Under the pieces are notes generated by a model that had not been told where the DNA came from, ran no database searches, and was given only the letters and a program-made list of their open reading frames with translations. This document shows positions 9,478-62,877 of a DNA stretch of 64,000 bases, piece after piece. Every line of letters starts with the position of its first letter. The first letter of the stretch is position 1. Position numbers and translations under genes: made by a program. The stretch comes from Fimbriosthenelais zetlandica (Eukaryota): NCBI GenBank assembly GCA_977030845.1, contig OZ365110.1, positions 25,482,001-25,546,000 of the forward strand, in the 5' to 3' direction.

Positions 9478-12086
9478 TCATTGTGATTGAGGAATGGGGC
9501 AATATTGAACGACTTGTCTTTCAGCGATTAGAGATCTCGGTACCTTCATATGGCATAGTATAGGTAAAGTATTGGCTTTGGGTATAAACGGGGGAGGGGC
9601 TCTCCACTCCCATTTACACCGTCCCGGACACTGGTGATTCAGATGACAAAATGATTCTGACCAGTCCGAGACAAACTTGTGACCTTTATAGAAAACAGCC
9701 CCACCTGGCCAGGTGCAGCTAACGGTAGTGAACAGATCTTGTTTGGAATCAAAACTGGGAACTCCAGAAGATCTGCAGGTCCATAGACGATTATCAGGAT
9801 CATAGTGATAAGTCATTCTGAGGGTGGAAGGATCTGCGAGGATGATCTCACTATCTGAGGTGTACAAGGCATGATTCTGTGTGATGGGGATAGGGTTGCC
9901 CTCTTCATCAGAAGGCCCCTGTAACTGCTCCCATGTATGACTCTCAGGGTCATATCTATGGAACTGGGCTTCAGTGGCGAAGATAGCACCGAAAAGATCA
10001 ATTTTAAAGGACATAACTATGTAAATAAAATCTCCATGGGAGACAGCTTTGAGGATTTGTTTGGGAGGGCTGAGGAAGGCCGTGTTACGTTGGATTTGCG
10101 AGAGGGCGGTCCAGCGTTGTTCATCTAGATCATAGCTTTCACCAGGAGTGTCGCCACTGATGATATACAGTTTATTAGAGTGAGTGATGACTGATTGGAC
10201 GTTGAGGTGAGTGTGGGAGGTGGGAGGGATGGTTGACCAAGTCATCGTTTCCATGTTCAGGCAGTGTTCCTGTGGGATATAACCTCGCTGGCATCCTCCA
10301 ATTATGTAGAGCTGAAAATGAAAAAAACGGATATAATTTCATATAAAAAAGAAAATAGACCATAATAGAGAAAAGGGAAAATATAAGGACAATGTGGATT
10401 GACACTGTTGAATATAACTAATCCTAAATTTATCTCACTGGTTTTTAACATACCTTATGGCCATGCTGTACCATTCCATGATTCTTCCTTTTCTCGGGTA
10501 ATTCAGGTAAAGTAATCCAATGATCATCTTGTACAACATAAGCCATGTTATTTAGTTGATCCTCAAATCCATTGACTACAATCAAGTCTAATAGATCAGT
10601 GGTTGTGACATCCCTCGTTTCATTCTGTAATCTCTCACTTGGATCCACCCTGGACCTTTTCTTGGGAGGTCCATCTCTTTCTTCTACTAAGACCAAGCCT
10701 CTAGTGACGGTAGCAGGTGATGAAGTTGGGGAGTGAGTCTTCAGGAGATCATTTAGCAACATTTTGCATTTCTTATTTGTCACAATCAGTTCATGGGTCA
10801 GCATTTTGCTGATAACAGAGTTGATACCAGGAAAACTTTGTTTTTTCAGAGCATCATAGACAATATTTGGAAACATTTTGTCATGGAAAACAATTTCTCT
10901 GCCCCGCCTTTCATACAGCACCCACTGAGTTAGGAGATCAAGAAGGAGAGAAGGCTTGATGACTTCTTTCACTTTTTTATCACCAAGAATTAACTGGATT
11001 TCATCTGGGAAGATCGTACACAAATCACTAGAGTGTTGGAGGTAATCTTCTAATCGGGACATGACCACGCCCCTTGCAGCTTCATACACTTCTTGTAGGC
11101 AATACATATGAGCAGTTATCATGTATTCAACACAATTTTCCACATTGACTGAGTTGAGAAGAAGTTTTCTGATTTCATCTTTTAACTCGTCCATGATGAG
11201 GTAGTCAGCAGCGTGTAGTAAAGCTTTTAAGTCTTCCACATTCACAGCTTGGCATGTTTTCGTTGGTGAGGGTGTCTGACTCGTTGTAGATGAAGGTTGA
11301 GACGCATGTCTGGACCCCACAGCAGCTGATGTGCTTGCCGTTGGACCTGCATTTTGATTCCTGTGGCTGTTAAGATTTAAACAACCAGTGTAGACATACT
11401 CCAGGACCTGTTGGAGAGCGCCTGATGTGATTTCTGGAAGGTGGACGACCTGGGCATTGTTGAAGGATATGTCTTTCTCGGCATGTAGAGCTTCAAAATA
11501 TTGACTGCATGTGACCAGAACGCAAATATGGGCTCTGGATTCTTGACCTGCAATGGAAAATATTTAAGTTTTTTTTTTAATAAGCCTAAACTTGTGCATT
11601 GCATGGTTTAAATGTTTCTTTGCTTCTCCAACGCAATCACAGGCAAAGTCTTCACTTTACATTTTTATAGGGCCTACTTATGAAATTATGTAGGCCTACT
11701 GTAGGCCTACCTGTTGTCGTGTTGAACAGGTTAGAATATAAATAAATTAATTAAATAAAACAAACACATAGGCTAATCACCCTCCCCCTTTTTTGATCAG
11801 GATAGGTAGACTGGTGGTGGTTGTAAAAACATCATCTTATTTTTATAGTTATGCTATTATTCAACGCAGAGTCGAAGGTAGCTGCTGCTATACCGAAAAT
11901 GAAAGCTTTCTATTAAAAAAAAAAAAAATAGGGCCTACCTTGCGAGATGAGTGTGATGTCACACACTTTGCCCAACTTTCGCTGCTCATTCAATCTCCGG
12001 AGAACCACGGCCTCGTGTGTCTTTATCTCCTCTACTTCAGGACATTTTGTCGATCTATTATGTGGTTCAATCACCCGACCTTCCAT
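9478..12086 (-). CDS. BTB-BACK-Kelch (KLHL/KBTBD-like) protein, about 691 aa; exons 12086-11939, 11547-10454, 10311-9478
   Basis: Contains LRRLNEQRKLGKVCDITL, RAHICVLVTCSQYF, ALQQVLEYVYTG, LLHAADYLIMDEL, BACK NVENCV and degenerate kelch repeats (LYIIGG, RYDPESHTWE). Phases 1 and 0 join the three exons in frame. Confidence 0.88.
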
Positions 12087-34216: not shown

Positions 34217-37200
34217 ATGGCCTTGTTCTGGATATCTGTGTTAAATGTCTGCCTGATTTTCACTGTTGGCGCCACTTTTCCAGCCAATGAATATGAGTAT
34301 TCTGTAAAGCGGCAATGGCTATTTGAAGCGGAGGAAAAGTTTGAAGGGAAGATAAACGATTTAAATCAGGTAACGGTAGAACAGTTTTTTCAATCGTTAT
34401 TAGACCCGTCGCTTTTTTTTGCAGTTCGTTTTTATTTATGTTTTTCTCGAAATATTGTTTAATCGTAACTTATTTTGAGTAAGTCTGAGCAATTTTCTAA
34501 ATAAAAGAAATTCCCGGAAAAATCGTTTTGGGGTGTTTTAACATTAGGCCTAGGCCTACATAGATGGGCGTACATTTTTCAGGCAGGAGAATTATCCTAT
34601 ATTGTCTGGAGTATATTCAAATACTAGGCTACATACAGCCCTGATAGTCTGGACTACTTAAAAATTACGTAGCCCAGGCAGGAAAATACGCCTCATTCCG
34701 AGAGCGGGCAATATTGGCTTGAGAGGGGGCAATATGTGCTACTATTACCCGCTCTCAAACTAACCATATCTCATATCTGATTATAAATATGAGATATTTG
34801 TGATATATAGTCTCATGGAGCATTATATAACGTTCAGTCACAAGCGCTCAGCGCTACGCAAGCAGATTTTGTTTTTTTAATGGAAAAGAGGCCATAATTA
34901 TGTTATCAGAATGTTAAGCATACTTGACCAAAATTGTTTTGGGGGGACTTGAACAGTTTGCTTAACCTAGCCTATATTTATTCTATTTCGCTGCTAACCA
35001 CAAAGGATTCCCTGTACAAATAAAATAACGGAAAGTTAGTTAAGACGAAATGAGACATAATTCAGGGTAGCTCTTCAAAACCAGTCATATTGATCAATAA
35101 TATATTGACCGTACATTTCCCCTACTCATATACAATCTATAATGATTGATGATTTGACATAGATTTAATTCTCTGTCACGCTGATTTATGATCAATGACA
35201 TTCCCTAAGTCAGGTGCATGATGATAAATATAATGTCCTGATAATGATATTAGGTCCTTAGACTTGGAGGAATCAAGGATTACTAGGCCTATGCTATGCG
35301 AGAGGAATTCGTACAGTGTACTGGATAATTATTATGGCATAAAAACAGACAGAAAAAATAATGTTACAATTATTGCAATAAAAATTACCGTTTGTCAAAA
35401 CATAGCCTCAGCGACAGAGCCAGTTTCTGACGGACAATGGCGTATTCAAGATGTTATCTTATCAGACCGGTTTGACTACTTTTGATAGAGCATTATCATA
35501 GAACAATAAATGTAAATACATGTAACAATAGACCATTATAAGTATTTATCATCCAATATCTGTCTAAATTGAAAAGTGAACACATCCAACTCACAAGGGC
35601 CTCTAATTAATAATAATAATAATTTCTACAAAACCGGTACCGGTAATTTTCTTGTAGAATGAGACACTGGTAGATCATTATTTGCAATACCTGAAGTGGG
35701 CAGAGTTTAAAGCCACCCAGCACCGTTTTCTGCCTTTCTTACCTGTCAATCAAACAACCATGGTTGAAATTATGCAGTCATCCGTCTACAAGGCGTTAGT
35801 TCATCTCCCAAAGGGGGGTAGCATGCATACCCATGAGAGTGAGTAGTCTCCTAATGAATGCAAAGTAATACTTTTAAAACGACTACCGGTATTTATTAAT
35901 ATAGGCAGTAACATGTATATATATGATACCATACCAATAGTTTTTTTAAACTTAATCATAGACTTTATATTTTTGCTTTGTTATTTAACTGAAGTAGATT
36001 ATAACATAGACCAATTTGTAGGTCTATATGTTTAAAAGTAGGGCCTAACTAAGTTATGTAATGTTATAATATTCTATTTGACTCCTAGAATGATCTAAAA
36101 CATGCATTTCTGTTTGCTCAATATGGCTACCACCAGATCATGAAGTTAGTAGGGCTGACCTACTGGACATGCTGTGGGACTCTGATGAATTCCAGTATCT
36201 GTATGTGACTACAGAGGAATATGAGCGTGGTCCCTGGAGACTGGACTTCTTTGTTAGACCACCTGATGAGATAGGGTGGCTGAAAATGGATGAAAGCAAC
36301 GTCACTAAGGTTAAAATAATATATTTGAGATAATAATATAGGTACAGTGTAATATTATGTATACATGTATACATAAAAGTTATGGGTCTATCAGCTTAGG
36401 CCTCCAAATGGCTGAAATACAATTCAGTAACCTTTCTGATTTAAAGCTCCTGGTTTGTGGACTGAACTGGTTGTATACTTTAACTTAATATATTTTGTTT
36501 TGACAGGAGGAACTTCTATCAACCCAGACCCTGTTGGGAGTTATGACAGACTATGCCAAATCTAACCCCTCCAACTCCGGTCAGCGATGGATGGAAATGA
36601 ACCCACTCTGGGGCAGGGCTGCTGGTCTTCTAAATAACATCAATATTAAAAAAGCTTATATTCAGAAGATGTATGAGAAAAACCTAAAGGAGGGTGTCCA
36701 GTATTTAGAAACCAGGAAGTCAGTAGGCAGTTCACGTCTGTATAGGTTGGACCCAGATGAGGAAAGCAACGATGGAAAAGTTTTTCTGGAAACTAAAGAA
36801 AATGCAGGTGAACTGGAAATAAACATCACCATGGAAATACTTGAAGATTTCATTAAAGAGAATCCATCATTTATTGGTCATAAAACGATAACCTACACAA
36901 CAAGGAGTAACACTGACTTGAATTACAACTGGAAGAACATGGAGAAAGCACTCAGATTACACAAAATGTATCCAGACCATCTTGTTGGATTTGATTTGGT
37001 TGGTGAGGAAGATGCAGGGAACTCTCATTTGTTCTTCCTTGAAAACTTTATGAAACTTTATGATCCAAACACTGGAGAAACAAAGATACCATTGTTCCAG
37101 CATACAGGGGAGAGCAGCTGGCCTCAGGATCTCATTACGTCCCGTAATGACAAGGACCCAGTGTCGACAAACCAGAACACGTACGAAGCCATACTGATGG

Positions 37201-38066
37201 GTTCACGTAGAGTGGGTCATGGACTAGCTTATTACAAACACCCATACTTAATGAAACTCCTCAAGGACAAAGATGTAGCTATTGAGATATGCCCCGTGAG
37301 TAACCAGATTCTCGGATTTATTCCAGACATCAGAAACCACCCCGCTGTGGAATACATCAGAACTGGTCTTCCAGTCATCCTTGGAACAGATGATCCAGGA
37401 ACGTTTGGAGTGGACCACTTCAACCTGGATTGGTACATGGCATTCATGGCTTGGGGCTTAGACTTAACAGACATGAAGAAGATTTCATACAATGCTGTCA
37501 AATACAGTGCCATGACGGACGCAGAGAAGATAAATGCCAATGGAAAACTAGACGCAGCCTGGGAAAAGTACATTGATGAGATATTGGTCGACGCATGTTC
37601 AATCAGTTCTACTTCTGTTCCAGTAGTTGGGCGTCTATTACCAAGGGAAGGAGCCAAAATAGGTGGTACCAAAATCCACATCTTTGGTCACAATTTCGAG
37701 GCTGCCATCCAGGAGATGTGTGAAGGAAGATATCCAAGGTGTCGCTTTGGTGAAAAGGAAACTCCAGCTCTATACCTTAGTAACTACCATATTGTTTGTG
37801 AGGCACCCAAGCCAGATGCTGAGAATGTCACTGAGGTCGATGTGAGCCTGTCTCTCGTCCATGGAAAATGGTTAGAAACTGGACAGAAATTTGTCTACAA
37901 ATATGATGAATTTACAACTACCATAGACATAGAAACAACTACTGAACCACCCACAACCACCGAATCATACTCAGGAAGTAGATCCAGCCACAAACAAAAT
38001 ATGCTTCCTGCAATCTTCCTTTCATTCTGTCTTCTTAAAATATTTGCTAAATTAGTAACCTTCTAA
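34217..38066 (+). CDS. ADA2: Adenosine deaminase 2 (CECR1/ADGF family) with a C-terminal IPT/TIG domain, Thr-rich stalk and hydrophobic tail; exons 34217-34369, 35658-35838, 36137-36309, 36507-38066
   Basis: Signal peptide MALFWISVLNVCLIFTVGA, followed by LPKGGSMHTHE, GFDLVGEED, QHTGES, RRVGHG, IEICPVSNQILG and LGTDDPG. The TIG domain reads PVVGRLLPREG..GGTKIHIFGHNF...CRFG...IVCEAP. Confidence 0.9.
34700..34797. repeat. Paired inverted repeats (foldback or MITE remnant) in ADA2 intron 1
   Basis: GAGAGCGGGCAATA (34700-34713) pairs with TATTACCCGCTCTC (34743-34756), and ATATCTCATAT pairs with ATATGAGATAT (34766-34797). Confidence 0.6.
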
Positions 38067-38651: not shown

Positions 38652-41553
<2,902 letters not shown>

Positions 41554-61700: not shown

Positions 61701-62877
61701 TGTCTAAGGCATTCTGATTGCCTCCATGCTCGAGGTGTTGTACATATCTGTTCTAGAGCACCTGCACTTATAAAATATTATTTCATTGGAAAATCTGCTT
61801 GCTTGTTTTTTATGCTATCCCTCAAGAATTCATAGGAATTTGAATAAATTGTGACAGCTGTGCCTGAACAATTTGACTCATCTTTAGCAATGTATATAGA
61901 TGACCACTCACTGTTTAGTATCTTGGCCTTTTGAAAATTCACACTTCAACTTGAAGAAGAGACAGGAACCCACTTCTACCATTGCTAAAACTAAAAAAGC
62001 CCAAAAAATCATACAAACCGACACTTGTTTTCAGTCCATCAAAGAAGACTCGTCTGATGGACGTGGTAGCCATGGTTATGGGTCAGAGACCGGTCATGAC
62101 AGTCTGATGGAGGATAACATGCACCGAGTTGACAGCCAATCTGAGAACGACTTTTCCAAACTTTACGACAGACCAAAATTTGTCCTTGATTCTGAAACGT
62201 CAGACTCAACACGACCCAAAACAGCCCCAGTCGCTAAGGGGAAATCTGAGGAAACGGACAAAAAGAATTGGAGTAATGAAGTTAAGGAAGACGGAAATGC
62301 GGAGGAAATTAAAAGGAAAGTCAAGCGAAGGAAAAATCGCCCTAAGGTAAAGAAGTTCCTAGAGGCCAACCAAGAAGAGGTTGACCTTGAAAGTAGTGGT
62401 GCTGGGAGGGTGAGAGATGAATACCGAAAACTGCAGGAAGCGTCCACAGATGACGAAGAGGAAGAAGAAGGCGAGAAAATGGATGGAAAATCCAAGAGAA
62501 TATCCCTGAGGAAGCAATGGGCATTACAAAGGCAATTATCTGAGGTGAAAGAGTTAAACATAGCAACTGAGGAGGGTGCTTCATTGAGCAATCAGTTAGC
62601 TGTGAATGATGCAGTCGTTTCACGTATAGACAATATGGAACAACAACTGAATGAATTAAAGGATGAAACAAGGAGGTCTCTCTATAATATAGAGGCATTG
62701 CTCAGGAGTGCTGTTTTTGCACGTGGCCAGCAGTTGCCACCATTATCTGCTCAATCTTCTGTGGAGGCGTCCACTTTTACACCAGGTGACCCCTATAGGG
62801 CATTTGAGACCTTTTCTCCACCTCGTCCACAGGTGTCTCCCCCACCTTATAGGCGACAAATGAACTTCCCTCCATGA
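46730..62877 (+). CDS. TRPM: TRPM-family cation channel without a NUDT9-H or kinase domain; exons 46730-46879 (or alternative 48582-48734), 49435-49544, 49663-49766, 49939-50090, 50325-50498, 50684-50881, 51095-51284, 51399-51570, 52008-52161, 52293-52359, 52583-52699, 52836-53223, 53455-53598, 53696-53837, 54338-54415, 54529-54672, 57044-57172, 57281-57541, 57685-57859, 57972-58125, 58296-58474, 58735-58870, 61018-61225, 62035-62877
   Basis: SLOG/MHR motifs LVITVIGGAKNF, NAWIITGG, CIGIAPWG, LNADHTHFLLVDDG, VPVVLLVVEGG, GTGRAAD, QLKLAITWNRSD and PFRELFLWAVLMNR, six hydrophobic TM segments, LLLNLLIAIF and a TRP helix. All phases join in frame. Confidence 0.93.
48582..48734 (+). CDS. Putative alternative first coding exon of the TRPM gene
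   Basis: The ATG follows an in-frame stop (TGA 48528-48530). It opens 51 codons (MANKRSMVTPLMDTF...FISQFRQ) ending in a phase-0 CAA|GTGAGT donor compatible with the acceptor at 49434/49435. Confidence 0.6.
53950..54209 (+). repeat. About 29-bp minisatellite, roughly 8-9 degenerate copies, in a TRPM intron
   Basis: Units resemble GGCCTATAATTGANTATGAGAAGTCAAAT. Confidence 0.85.
54687..55660. mobile_element. Non-autonomous repeat with a terminal hairpin and internal tandem duplication (Helentron/DINE-like candidate)
   Basis: Hairpin CCCATTTCCCC/GGGGAAAATGGG (54687-54715), a TAT/T-rich tract, TTTGACCTTTGACC and GGTCAAGGTCA motifs, and a direct repeat GCAAGTTTATTTTTAAAGATAGAGCT at 55264 and 55433 (169-bp offset). 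Confidence 0.45.
59148..60931. mobile_element. Possible TTAA-flanked (piggyBac-like) non-autonomous insertion in TRPM intron 22
   Basis: The right end reads GCCCGCCCCGAAAGGG-TTAA and a possible left end reads TTAA-CACTTT...GACGGG. The interior is GC-richer with no intact transposase ORF. Confidence 0.3.

Follow-up and report, generated by a model that had tools for sequence, protein, structure and literature searches.

Does Fimbriosthenelais zetlandica possess a deaminase of the ADGF/ADA2 family that is held at the cell surface by an anchor of its own? The question is raised by positions 34217-38066 of a window of 64,000 nucleotides (the whole stretch of DNA that was analysed; assembly GCA_977030845.1, contig OZ365110.1, positions 25,482,001 to 25,546,000 of the forward strand), where a first-pass annotation had read an ADA2/ADGF deaminase continuing into an IPT/TIG domain, a mucin-like stalk and a glycosylphosphatidylinositol (GPI)-type tail. 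To our knowledge, the ADGF/ADA2 enzymes studied so far (human, insect, mollusc and Dictyostelium) have all been treated as soluble secreted or lysosomal proteins, and we know of cell-surface adenosine deamination only through the docking of ADA1 on CD26. The ADGF family has been described as secreted (PMC10358891). Our analysis showed a gene, of a lineage here called ADGF-TIG, whose product almost certainly has the architecture ADGF/ADA2 deaminase, IPT/TIG domain, linker and GPI-type tail. The overall best explanation, to which we lean, is that this protein would be a surface-held, GPI-anchored deaminase.

The list of open reading frames (ORFs) and the raw sequence contain a long open frame at 36534-38066 on the plus strand with three shorter coding pieces upstream. 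When the exons at 34217-34369, 35658-35838, 36137-36309 and 36507-38066 (plus strand) were joined, a single frame of 2067 nt (688 codons) was obtained. The gene model has four exons and three introns, all of the latter 5' of the large exon; every exon border is of the GT-AG type, the exon 1 donor reads AATCAG/gtaacg, and an in-frame stop is found 11 codons 5' of the ATG. Residues 8-650 of the model are collinear with residues 3-643 of a Lingula protein (P0006) at 46% identity, with no missing or extra pieces. On this model, the locus holds one intact gene in four exons, and its predicted product of 688 residues belongs to the ADGF/ADA2 family, whose members are secreted deaminases that depend on zinc and act on adenine nucleosides. 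Its parts are as follows.

34217-34369, plus strand: exon 1 of the gene model, with the start codon, a predicted signal peptide and the beginning of the ADGF N-terminal helical region.
34217-34273, plus strand: predicted signal peptide, residues 1-19, with a hydrophobic core and a predicted cleavage after VGA (-3/-1 rule applied by eye).
35658-35838, plus strand: exon 2, with the remaining ADGF N-terminal domain and strand beta-1, which carries the zinc ligands H108 and H110 and is followed by E111-N112.
35826-35834, plus strand: HTH motif (H108, H110).
36137-36309, plus strand: exon 3, an insertion that separates beta-1 from the remaining barrel and corresponds in place to the 'putative receptor-binding' insert of ADA2.
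36507-37616, plus strand: first part of exon 4, with the remaining barrel and its last helix, ending in C533 (PF00962, PDB matches, AlphaFold2).
37101-37112, plus strand: HTGE motif (H368, E371).
37215-37223, plus strand: GHG motif (H407).
37389-37397, plus strand: DDP motif (D464, D465).
37617-37901, plus strand: IPT/TIG domain, residues 540-634 (PF01833, AlphaFold2, Foldseek).
37902-38000, plus strand: disordered Thr/Pro/Glu-rich linker, residues 635-667, assigned from composition and from the predicted local distance difference test (pLDDT).
38001-38066, plus strand: C-terminal hydrophobic segment MLPAIFLSFCLLKIFAKLVTF, residues 668-688 (segment proper 38001-38063), with the stop codon directly after it.

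The last exon matched PF00962 (A_deaminase) with E 1.1e-23 and 84 bits against a cut-off of 27. The best sequence matches in the PDB were an Aplysia/Helix ADGF chimera (9nti, E 5.8e-48), the Helix pomatia AMP deaminase (HPAMPD, 9nte) and human ADA2 (3lgd, E 1.5e-42). An AlphaFold2 model of this exon, built from 51 aligned sequences, had a mean pLDDT of 89, and ADGF structures ranked first when the whole model was searched with Foldseek (E ~1e-21). The zinc ligands (H108 and H110 of HxH, H368 of HTGE and D464, the first Asp of DD) and the catalytic Glu, His and Asp (E371, H407 and D465) are all present. They align to their counterparts in HPAMPD and the ADGF chimera, and the 51 sequences show little or no variation at these positions. 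The four motifs had been called intact in the first-pass annotation, and both their positions and the alignment confirm it.

The N-terminal region is encoded by short exons, and its homology was shown indirectly through the Lingula protein. Pfam and PDB searches with the single N-terminal exons, which are short queries, gave no match, and the homologues P0006 and P0076 matched PF08451 (ADGF N-terminal) with 21.8 and 23.8 bits against a cut-off of 21.3. By way of the Lingula homologue, the exon 2 region aligns to the 'HLHD' of HPAMPD and ADA2. The insertion in exon 3 is free of cysteines; both the relatives and HPAMPD (residues ~126-200) are collinear with it, and the predicted mature N-terminus, FPANEYEYS, aligns with the relatives.

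The C-terminal two thirds of the barrel share exon 4 with the TIG domain, so that no splicing is needed to join them. The annotation had stated that the ORF runs into the TIG region without an intron; this is borne out, with TIG in the same exon as the catalytic motifs HTGE, GHG and DDP. PF01833 (TIG) was matched with 29.1 bits within the exon and with 32.2 bits by the C-terminal 162 residues alone (gathering cut-off 20.9), and the full profile, 1-84, was covered. The domain had been placed at about 37620-37900; it is confirmed, with the Pfam boundaries at 37617 and 37901. In both the last-exon model and a TIG-only model it was predicted with pLDDT >90 and seven to eight strands. The top Foldseek matches of the TIG-only model were the IPT/TIG domains of EBF1/EBF3, the IPT domains of MET and plexin-A, and the TIG domain of CAMTA1 (probability 1.00); NF-kB dimerisation domains were also among the matches, and the overall E values ranged from 1e-5 to 1e-4. 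Pfam, structure prediction, fold search and dozens of relatives that conserve it all support the annotated architecture.

Four cysteines are conserved in the family: one, C533, closes the last helix of the barrel, and the other three (C574, C581 and C600) belong to the TIG domain. They probably form two disulfides, and they fit an oxidising, extracellular environment.

Searches with the C-terminal part alone were less informative about the family. A word-index homology search with only TIG and tail returned nothing at E <=0.001. A profile search with a TIG-plus-tail alignment was swamped by giant poly-TIG proteins (P0121-P0270; 1,000-8,000 residues, 10-58 tandem TIG repeats) and yielded no family census; it shows only that the predicted domain is a generic extracellular-type TIG. 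In three of these giant proteins that were searched against Pfam, TIG was the only domain matched.

Behind the TIG domain, a Thr/Pro/Glu-rich stretch, TTTIDIETTTEPPTTTES, is found at 37914-37967 on the plus strand, with 9 Thr in 18 residues. In the AlphaFold2 model, pLDDT falls below 50 at exon residues 476-496, which correspond to this Thr/Pro linker. The 'mucin-like stalk' of the annotation is indeed Thr-rich and disordered, but with only ~33 residues in total it is a linker and not a mucin domain. The candidate omega sites for GPI attachment, S656, S658 and S660, lie at 37965-37979, with the SGS triplet at 37971-37979. Three small-residue triplets, SYS, SGS and SRS, stand 9, 7 and 5 residues ahead of the hydrophobic segment: between S658-G-S660 and that segment lies the polar spacer RSSHKQN, of seven residues, and the alternatives S656 and S660 have spacers of 9 and 5. 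The hydrophobic end measures 21 residues, with 0 residues after it; its best 12-residue window has a Kyte-Doolittle mean of 2.42, and AlphaFold2 modelled it as a helix. The predicted GPI-type pattern is a textbook one. The motifs, stalk, SGS and hydrophobic end that had been annotated were all found in their places.

The architecture is shared by many other proteins. A homology search returned 449 proteins, and most of the top 78 carry both PF00962 and PF01833. They include a Lingula anatina protein named 'adenosine deaminase 2' (P0006) and proteins of Paralvinella palmiformis (P0010), Owenia fusiformis (P0028), Dimorphilus gyrociliatus, Solemya velum, Lamellibrachia satsuma and Brachionus plicatilis. 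One ESM Atlas cluster comprises 116 eukaryotic proteins, most of them from molluscs, and 84% have TIG. Two AFDB cluster representatives, A0A6J8D8E7 and R7UFG3, superpose over barrel and TIG with template modelling (TM) scores of 0.77-0.79, which suggests that, in the predicted models, barrel and TIG are set to each other in much the same, rather fixed way. In the closest relative, P0001 (55% identity), barrel, TIG and tail likewise lie in one continuous exon, and its tail shares LPA..F...LL.K with the present one (P0001 keeps LLPAC.F...LLIK).

As judged from these relatives, ADGF-TIG is a large, conserved paralogue family across Spiralia, with members in rotifers and brachiopods as well as in molluscs and annelids. 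A quick maximum-likelihood tree places the protein with P0001-P0003 in a clade that includes the annelid Paralvinella. This tree leaves out fragments shorter than ~440 residues and the rows P0021, P0026, P0032, P0042, P0044, P0047-P0057, P0059-P0066, P0068 and P0070; P0076 falls on a long branch beside the bacterial outgroup, and its placement is unsure. The claim that this was the most novel architecture in the window is reduced accordingly, for dozens of relatives share ADA2 plus TIG, and such proteins are already in NCBI, UniProt, AFDB and the ESM Atlas as uncharacterised entries under automatic annotation. The annotation had also raised the case that the architecture was already described; among the open-access papers searched, we found none that describes it and none that mentions TIG, GPI anchoring or anchoring by a transmembrane segment in any ADGF/ADA2/CECR1 protein. 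The subfamily is apparently undescribed.

The homology search also returned many metagenomic ADGF-like proteins (among P0079-P0120) with A_deaminase_N and no TIG, whose N-termini resemble bacterial lipoprotein signal peptides (Cys after a short hydrophobic stretch). ADA2-type enzymes without TIG seem, from these sequences, to be widespread in bacteria too.

To compare tails, the C-termini of 80 TIG-type relatives were classed by a rule (best 12-residue hydropathy window, how many residues come after it, and whether small-residue triplets occur 5-14 residues before it) and checked against the sequences. In ~46 of the 80, the chain closes, exactly or but for a few residues, with 12-20 hydrophobic residues that in most cases follow a linker rich in Ser, Thr and Pro, which is the pattern of a GPI signal. 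Thr-rich linkers recur among the relatives. At least three proteins (P0069, P0076 and P0078) have instead a transmembrane helix with a charged cytoplasmic tail of 20-22 residues. On the quick tree, almost every subclade has members with a GPI-type tail, and at least seven changes of tail state are required. GPI-type tails together with transmembrane variants indicate that membrane attachment is recurrent in the family and has been reached in two ways. The surface tethering proposed in the annotation is thus strengthened by the relatives, most of them with a like tail and a few with a true transmembrane anchor, and is still a reading of sequence. That the protein would be tethered to a membrane we consider likely; that the tether would be a GPI anchor in particular is favoured with less assurance.

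The sequence and its comparisons establish how the gene is built, which domains and catalytic residues its product has and how it folds, and that relatives keep both the architecture and the tail type; GPI attachment, surface location, substrate and a role for TIG we infer as follows. The signal peptide would direct the protein into the endoplasmic reticulum, where the catalytic domain would fold with its zinc site intact and the short Thr/Pro linker would probably be O-glycosylated. A GPI anchor, attached at S658 (or S656 or S660), would then replace the C-terminal hydrophobic signal. Held in this way at the outer surface of the plasma membrane, the enzyme would have TIG as a rigid spacer or a contact module between barrel and membrane. 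There it would deaminate extracellular adenosine, possibly also or instead adenosine 5'-monophosphate (5'-AMP), to inosine or inosine 5'-monophosphate (IMP), and purinergic signals would be ended locally and not in the bulk fluid.

Several points count against this explanation; we take them up below together with the alternative readings on which they bear. Some of them concern method: the omega-site call was made with a hand-made rule, and the signal peptide was judged by eye.

The first concerns the substrate. The residue after HxH is Glu111, where HPAMPD has Asp124 and ADA2 has Asp115. The Asp at this position (D124 of HPAMPD) has been called invariant among characterised ADGFs, and HPAMPD binds the 5'-phosphate through the adjoining T125 together with R223, Y227, R232 and S256 (PMC12273558). 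Among 22 TIG-type proteins, the residue after HxH was E in 16, H in 2, D in 2, Q in 1 and Y in 1, that is, other than Asp in 20. We took Glu111 as a putative subfamily signature and not as a ground for excluding the protein from the ADGFs. At the five HPAMPD phosphate positions, the alignment gives N112, Ala, Asn, Lys and Ser, four of which are polar or charged. As aligned, the predicted ribose-5' pocket fits neither the ADA2 nor the HPAMPD pattern. The intact deaminase of the annotation stands as to its motifs, and adenosine as the substrate is insecure, given Glu111 and the altered 5' pocket.

The anchored enzyme might then act mainly on a 5'-nucleotide (AMP, dAMP or ADP), as an ecto-AMP deaminase that diverts AMP to IMP ahead of adenosine. 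This possibility overlaps with the best explanation and differs from it in substrate only. One ADGF, the Helix pomatia enzyme, prefers AMP, and the polar or charged character of four phosphate positions, with Lys for R232, Ser for S256 and Glu111 for the neighbouring Asp124, is in keeping with such a preference. However, only the Ser is identical to HPAMPD, while the phosphate-bonding Tyr227 is replaced by Asn and R223 by Ala; the published chimera-1, in which short segments alone were swapped, gained no AMP activity; and the alignment of the alphaH-alphaI loop, although ungapped, is modestly conserved. A nucleotide as the main substrate is accordingly improbable in our estimate, if the strongest of the alternatives. 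Adenosine as the main substrate is the default expectation, and we would incline to it.

The second concerns the anchor. The hydrophobic tail holds two lysines, and its 21 residues are long enough for a transmembrane helix. Because of these lysines and this length, a permanent type-I transmembrane helix without a cytoplasmic tail, in place of a cleaved GPI signal, is the main alternative for the same architecture. The lysines lie towards the C-terminal (cytoplasmic) end, a single helix is predicted, and P0069, P0076 and P0078 clearly use transmembrane anchors. Against this, those relatives have their charged cytoplasmic tails and the present protein has none, the three small-residue triplets lie at the canonical 5-9 residues upstream, and the hydrophobic ends of most relatives comprise just 12-17 residues, too short to span a membrane. 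A permanent transmembrane helix is unlikely on this balance, and less probable than a change of substrate.

The third is that ~24 of the 80 relatives, mainly a mollusc clade, Lingula and Dimorphilus, end shortly after TIG without a tail. From these relatives it follows that the anchor is dispensable and that TIG is conserved for more than use as a stalk. They are compatible with a secreted or endolysosomal lumenal ADGF, in which the tail would affect sorting or be removed. Human ADA2 is reported to be located in lysosomes and has been given a DNA-modifying or nucleic-acid-directed role (PMC12060026, PMC13751445), which points the same way. However, a hydrophobic C-terminal signal after a luminal domain normally leads to GPI or membrane attachment, deeply separated branches retain this type of tail, and genuine transmembrane variants are found among the relatives. 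GPI proteins can moreover cycle through endosomes, so that a lumenal location would not be exclusive of the preferred one. We regard a purely lumenal enzyme as quite unlikely.

The tailless ADA2-plus-TIG proteins of molluscs and brachiopods (P0006, P0033, P0037, P0038, P0041, P0043, P0045, P0046 and P0049) end in a short, recurring motif in which hydrophobic residues are joined by Gly or Gly-Lys, for example ...PFIG, ...DIIG, ...VLVG, ...IIVG and ...IIIGK. This ending might be a conserved C-terminal signal or come from an alternative terminal exon.

The last points concern the transcript: sequencing runs (RNA or DNA) were sought with the last exon and none was listed, so transcription, splice sites and 3' end are as predicted, and no AATAAA or ATTAAA was found within 530 nt of the stop. 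An artefact of the gene model, with TIG, stalk and tail missing from the mature mRNA or protein of this species, is nevertheless highly improbable, since TIG and tail are in frame in the exon that holds the catalytic residues, P0001 has the same continuous exon, uninterrupted full-length ORFs for barrel, TIG and tail occur on 2.2-2.7 kb contigs of other species (P0074, P0073 and P0067), and the four Cys and the TIG core are conserved.

The putatively GPI-anchored ADGF-TIG deaminase can be compared with several known systems. Human ADA2 (CECR1, 3LGD) is like it in the predicted signal peptide, the putative ADGF N-terminal region, the TIM barrel and the identical zinc and catalytic residues (structural E 4e-21), but it ends after the barrel without TIG, linker or hydrophobic tail, is soluble, and has Asp115 for Glu111; its much closer orthologue in this genome is a separate gene on contig 25. 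Aplysia ADGF (AGSA/MDGF) and HPAMPD (9NTE-9NTK), both secreted glycoproteins, are the best matches in sequence and fold (~30% identity over the barrel) and have the same catalytic site. They are unlike ADGF-TIG in ending after the barrel and forming soluble dimers, and the phosphate residues T, R, Y, R and S of HPAMPD are only partly mirrored. The ADA2-plus-TIG proteins of the databases (P0006, P0028, P0010, R7UFG3 and A0A6J8D8E7) share the whole architecture at 40-55% identity, including the TIG cysteines, and many have linker and hydrophobic tail, whereas Lingula and most molluscs lack the tail.

Vertebrate ADA1 on CD26/DPP4 (1W1I) offers a functional analogy, as adenosine deaminase activity is held at the cell surface there. 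ADA1, however, is of the cytosolic type, has no signal peptide and is bound non-covalently to another membrane protein, whereas ADGF-TIG is of the ADA2 type and has a predicted anchor in its own polypeptide. CD73 (ecto-5'-nucleotidase) is GPI-anchored and makes extracellular adenosine. It is thus a GPI-anchored purine ecto-enzyme of the same pathway, but its fold is unrelated and it shifts adenosine levels in the opposite direction; this parallel is drawn from general knowledge and not from a sequence comparison.

A search of the species' own genome (447 Mb, 79 contigs) found one TIG-type copy and one other ADGF locus, at 1821868-1822209 of contig 25 (L005 365-1863). The latter is multi-exonic and of the orthodox ADA2 type, matching human ADA2 with E 1e-47 over 115 residues, and it is 39% identical to the ADGF-TIG protein. 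ADGF-TIG is therefore a separate paralogue and not the only ADGF of the species. Tandem paralogues, as seen on the contig of one relative, were considered and rejected, as the window holds one copy and the genome one TIG-type copy. On the 3' side of the contig 25 gene (L005 2467-3342) there is a long tandem repeat with a period of ~30 nt, translating as KLPRSTKIYI repeats.

Other ORFs were noted in the window. At 40498-41553 (minus strand), a 351-residue ORF matches Folate_rec (E 1.8e-10) and then, over a further stretch, resembles glucose/sorbosone dehydrogenase, with an E of 1e-4 that does not reach the Pfam cut-off. This ORF has the look of an exon from an HHIP-like gene and is unrelated to the deaminase. 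A 258-residue ORF with Kelch repeats is located at 9478-10254 (minus strand), and the ORF beside it at 10445-11320 (minus strand) had no Pfam match, nor had a 325-residue ATG-started ORF at 61900-62877 (plus strand).

More broadly, and tentatively, these results may describe a so far undescribed spiralian branch of ADGFs whose members anchor themselves, with GPI as the ancestral means and a transmembrane helix in its place in some lineages. TIG and the remodelled pocket (Glu for Asp, with Lys and Ser) would make its members ecto-AMP/adenosine deaminases that shunt AMP to IMP in competition with the ecto-5'-nucleotidase route, while the orthodox ADA2 would be the soluble enzyme; we put this forward as a doubtful, though not negligible, possibility. 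With its altered 5' pocket, the protein is a natural test case for the specificity rules recently derived from the Helix AMP deaminase structures. What gives the finding its value is that a family, itself a variation on well-known enzymes, has been recognised, and not this single locus. If the explanation is true, a self-anchored ADGF lineage with an Ig-like domain would be a new component of invertebrate purinergic signalling, in which the spatial control of adenosine would be built into the enzyme itself.

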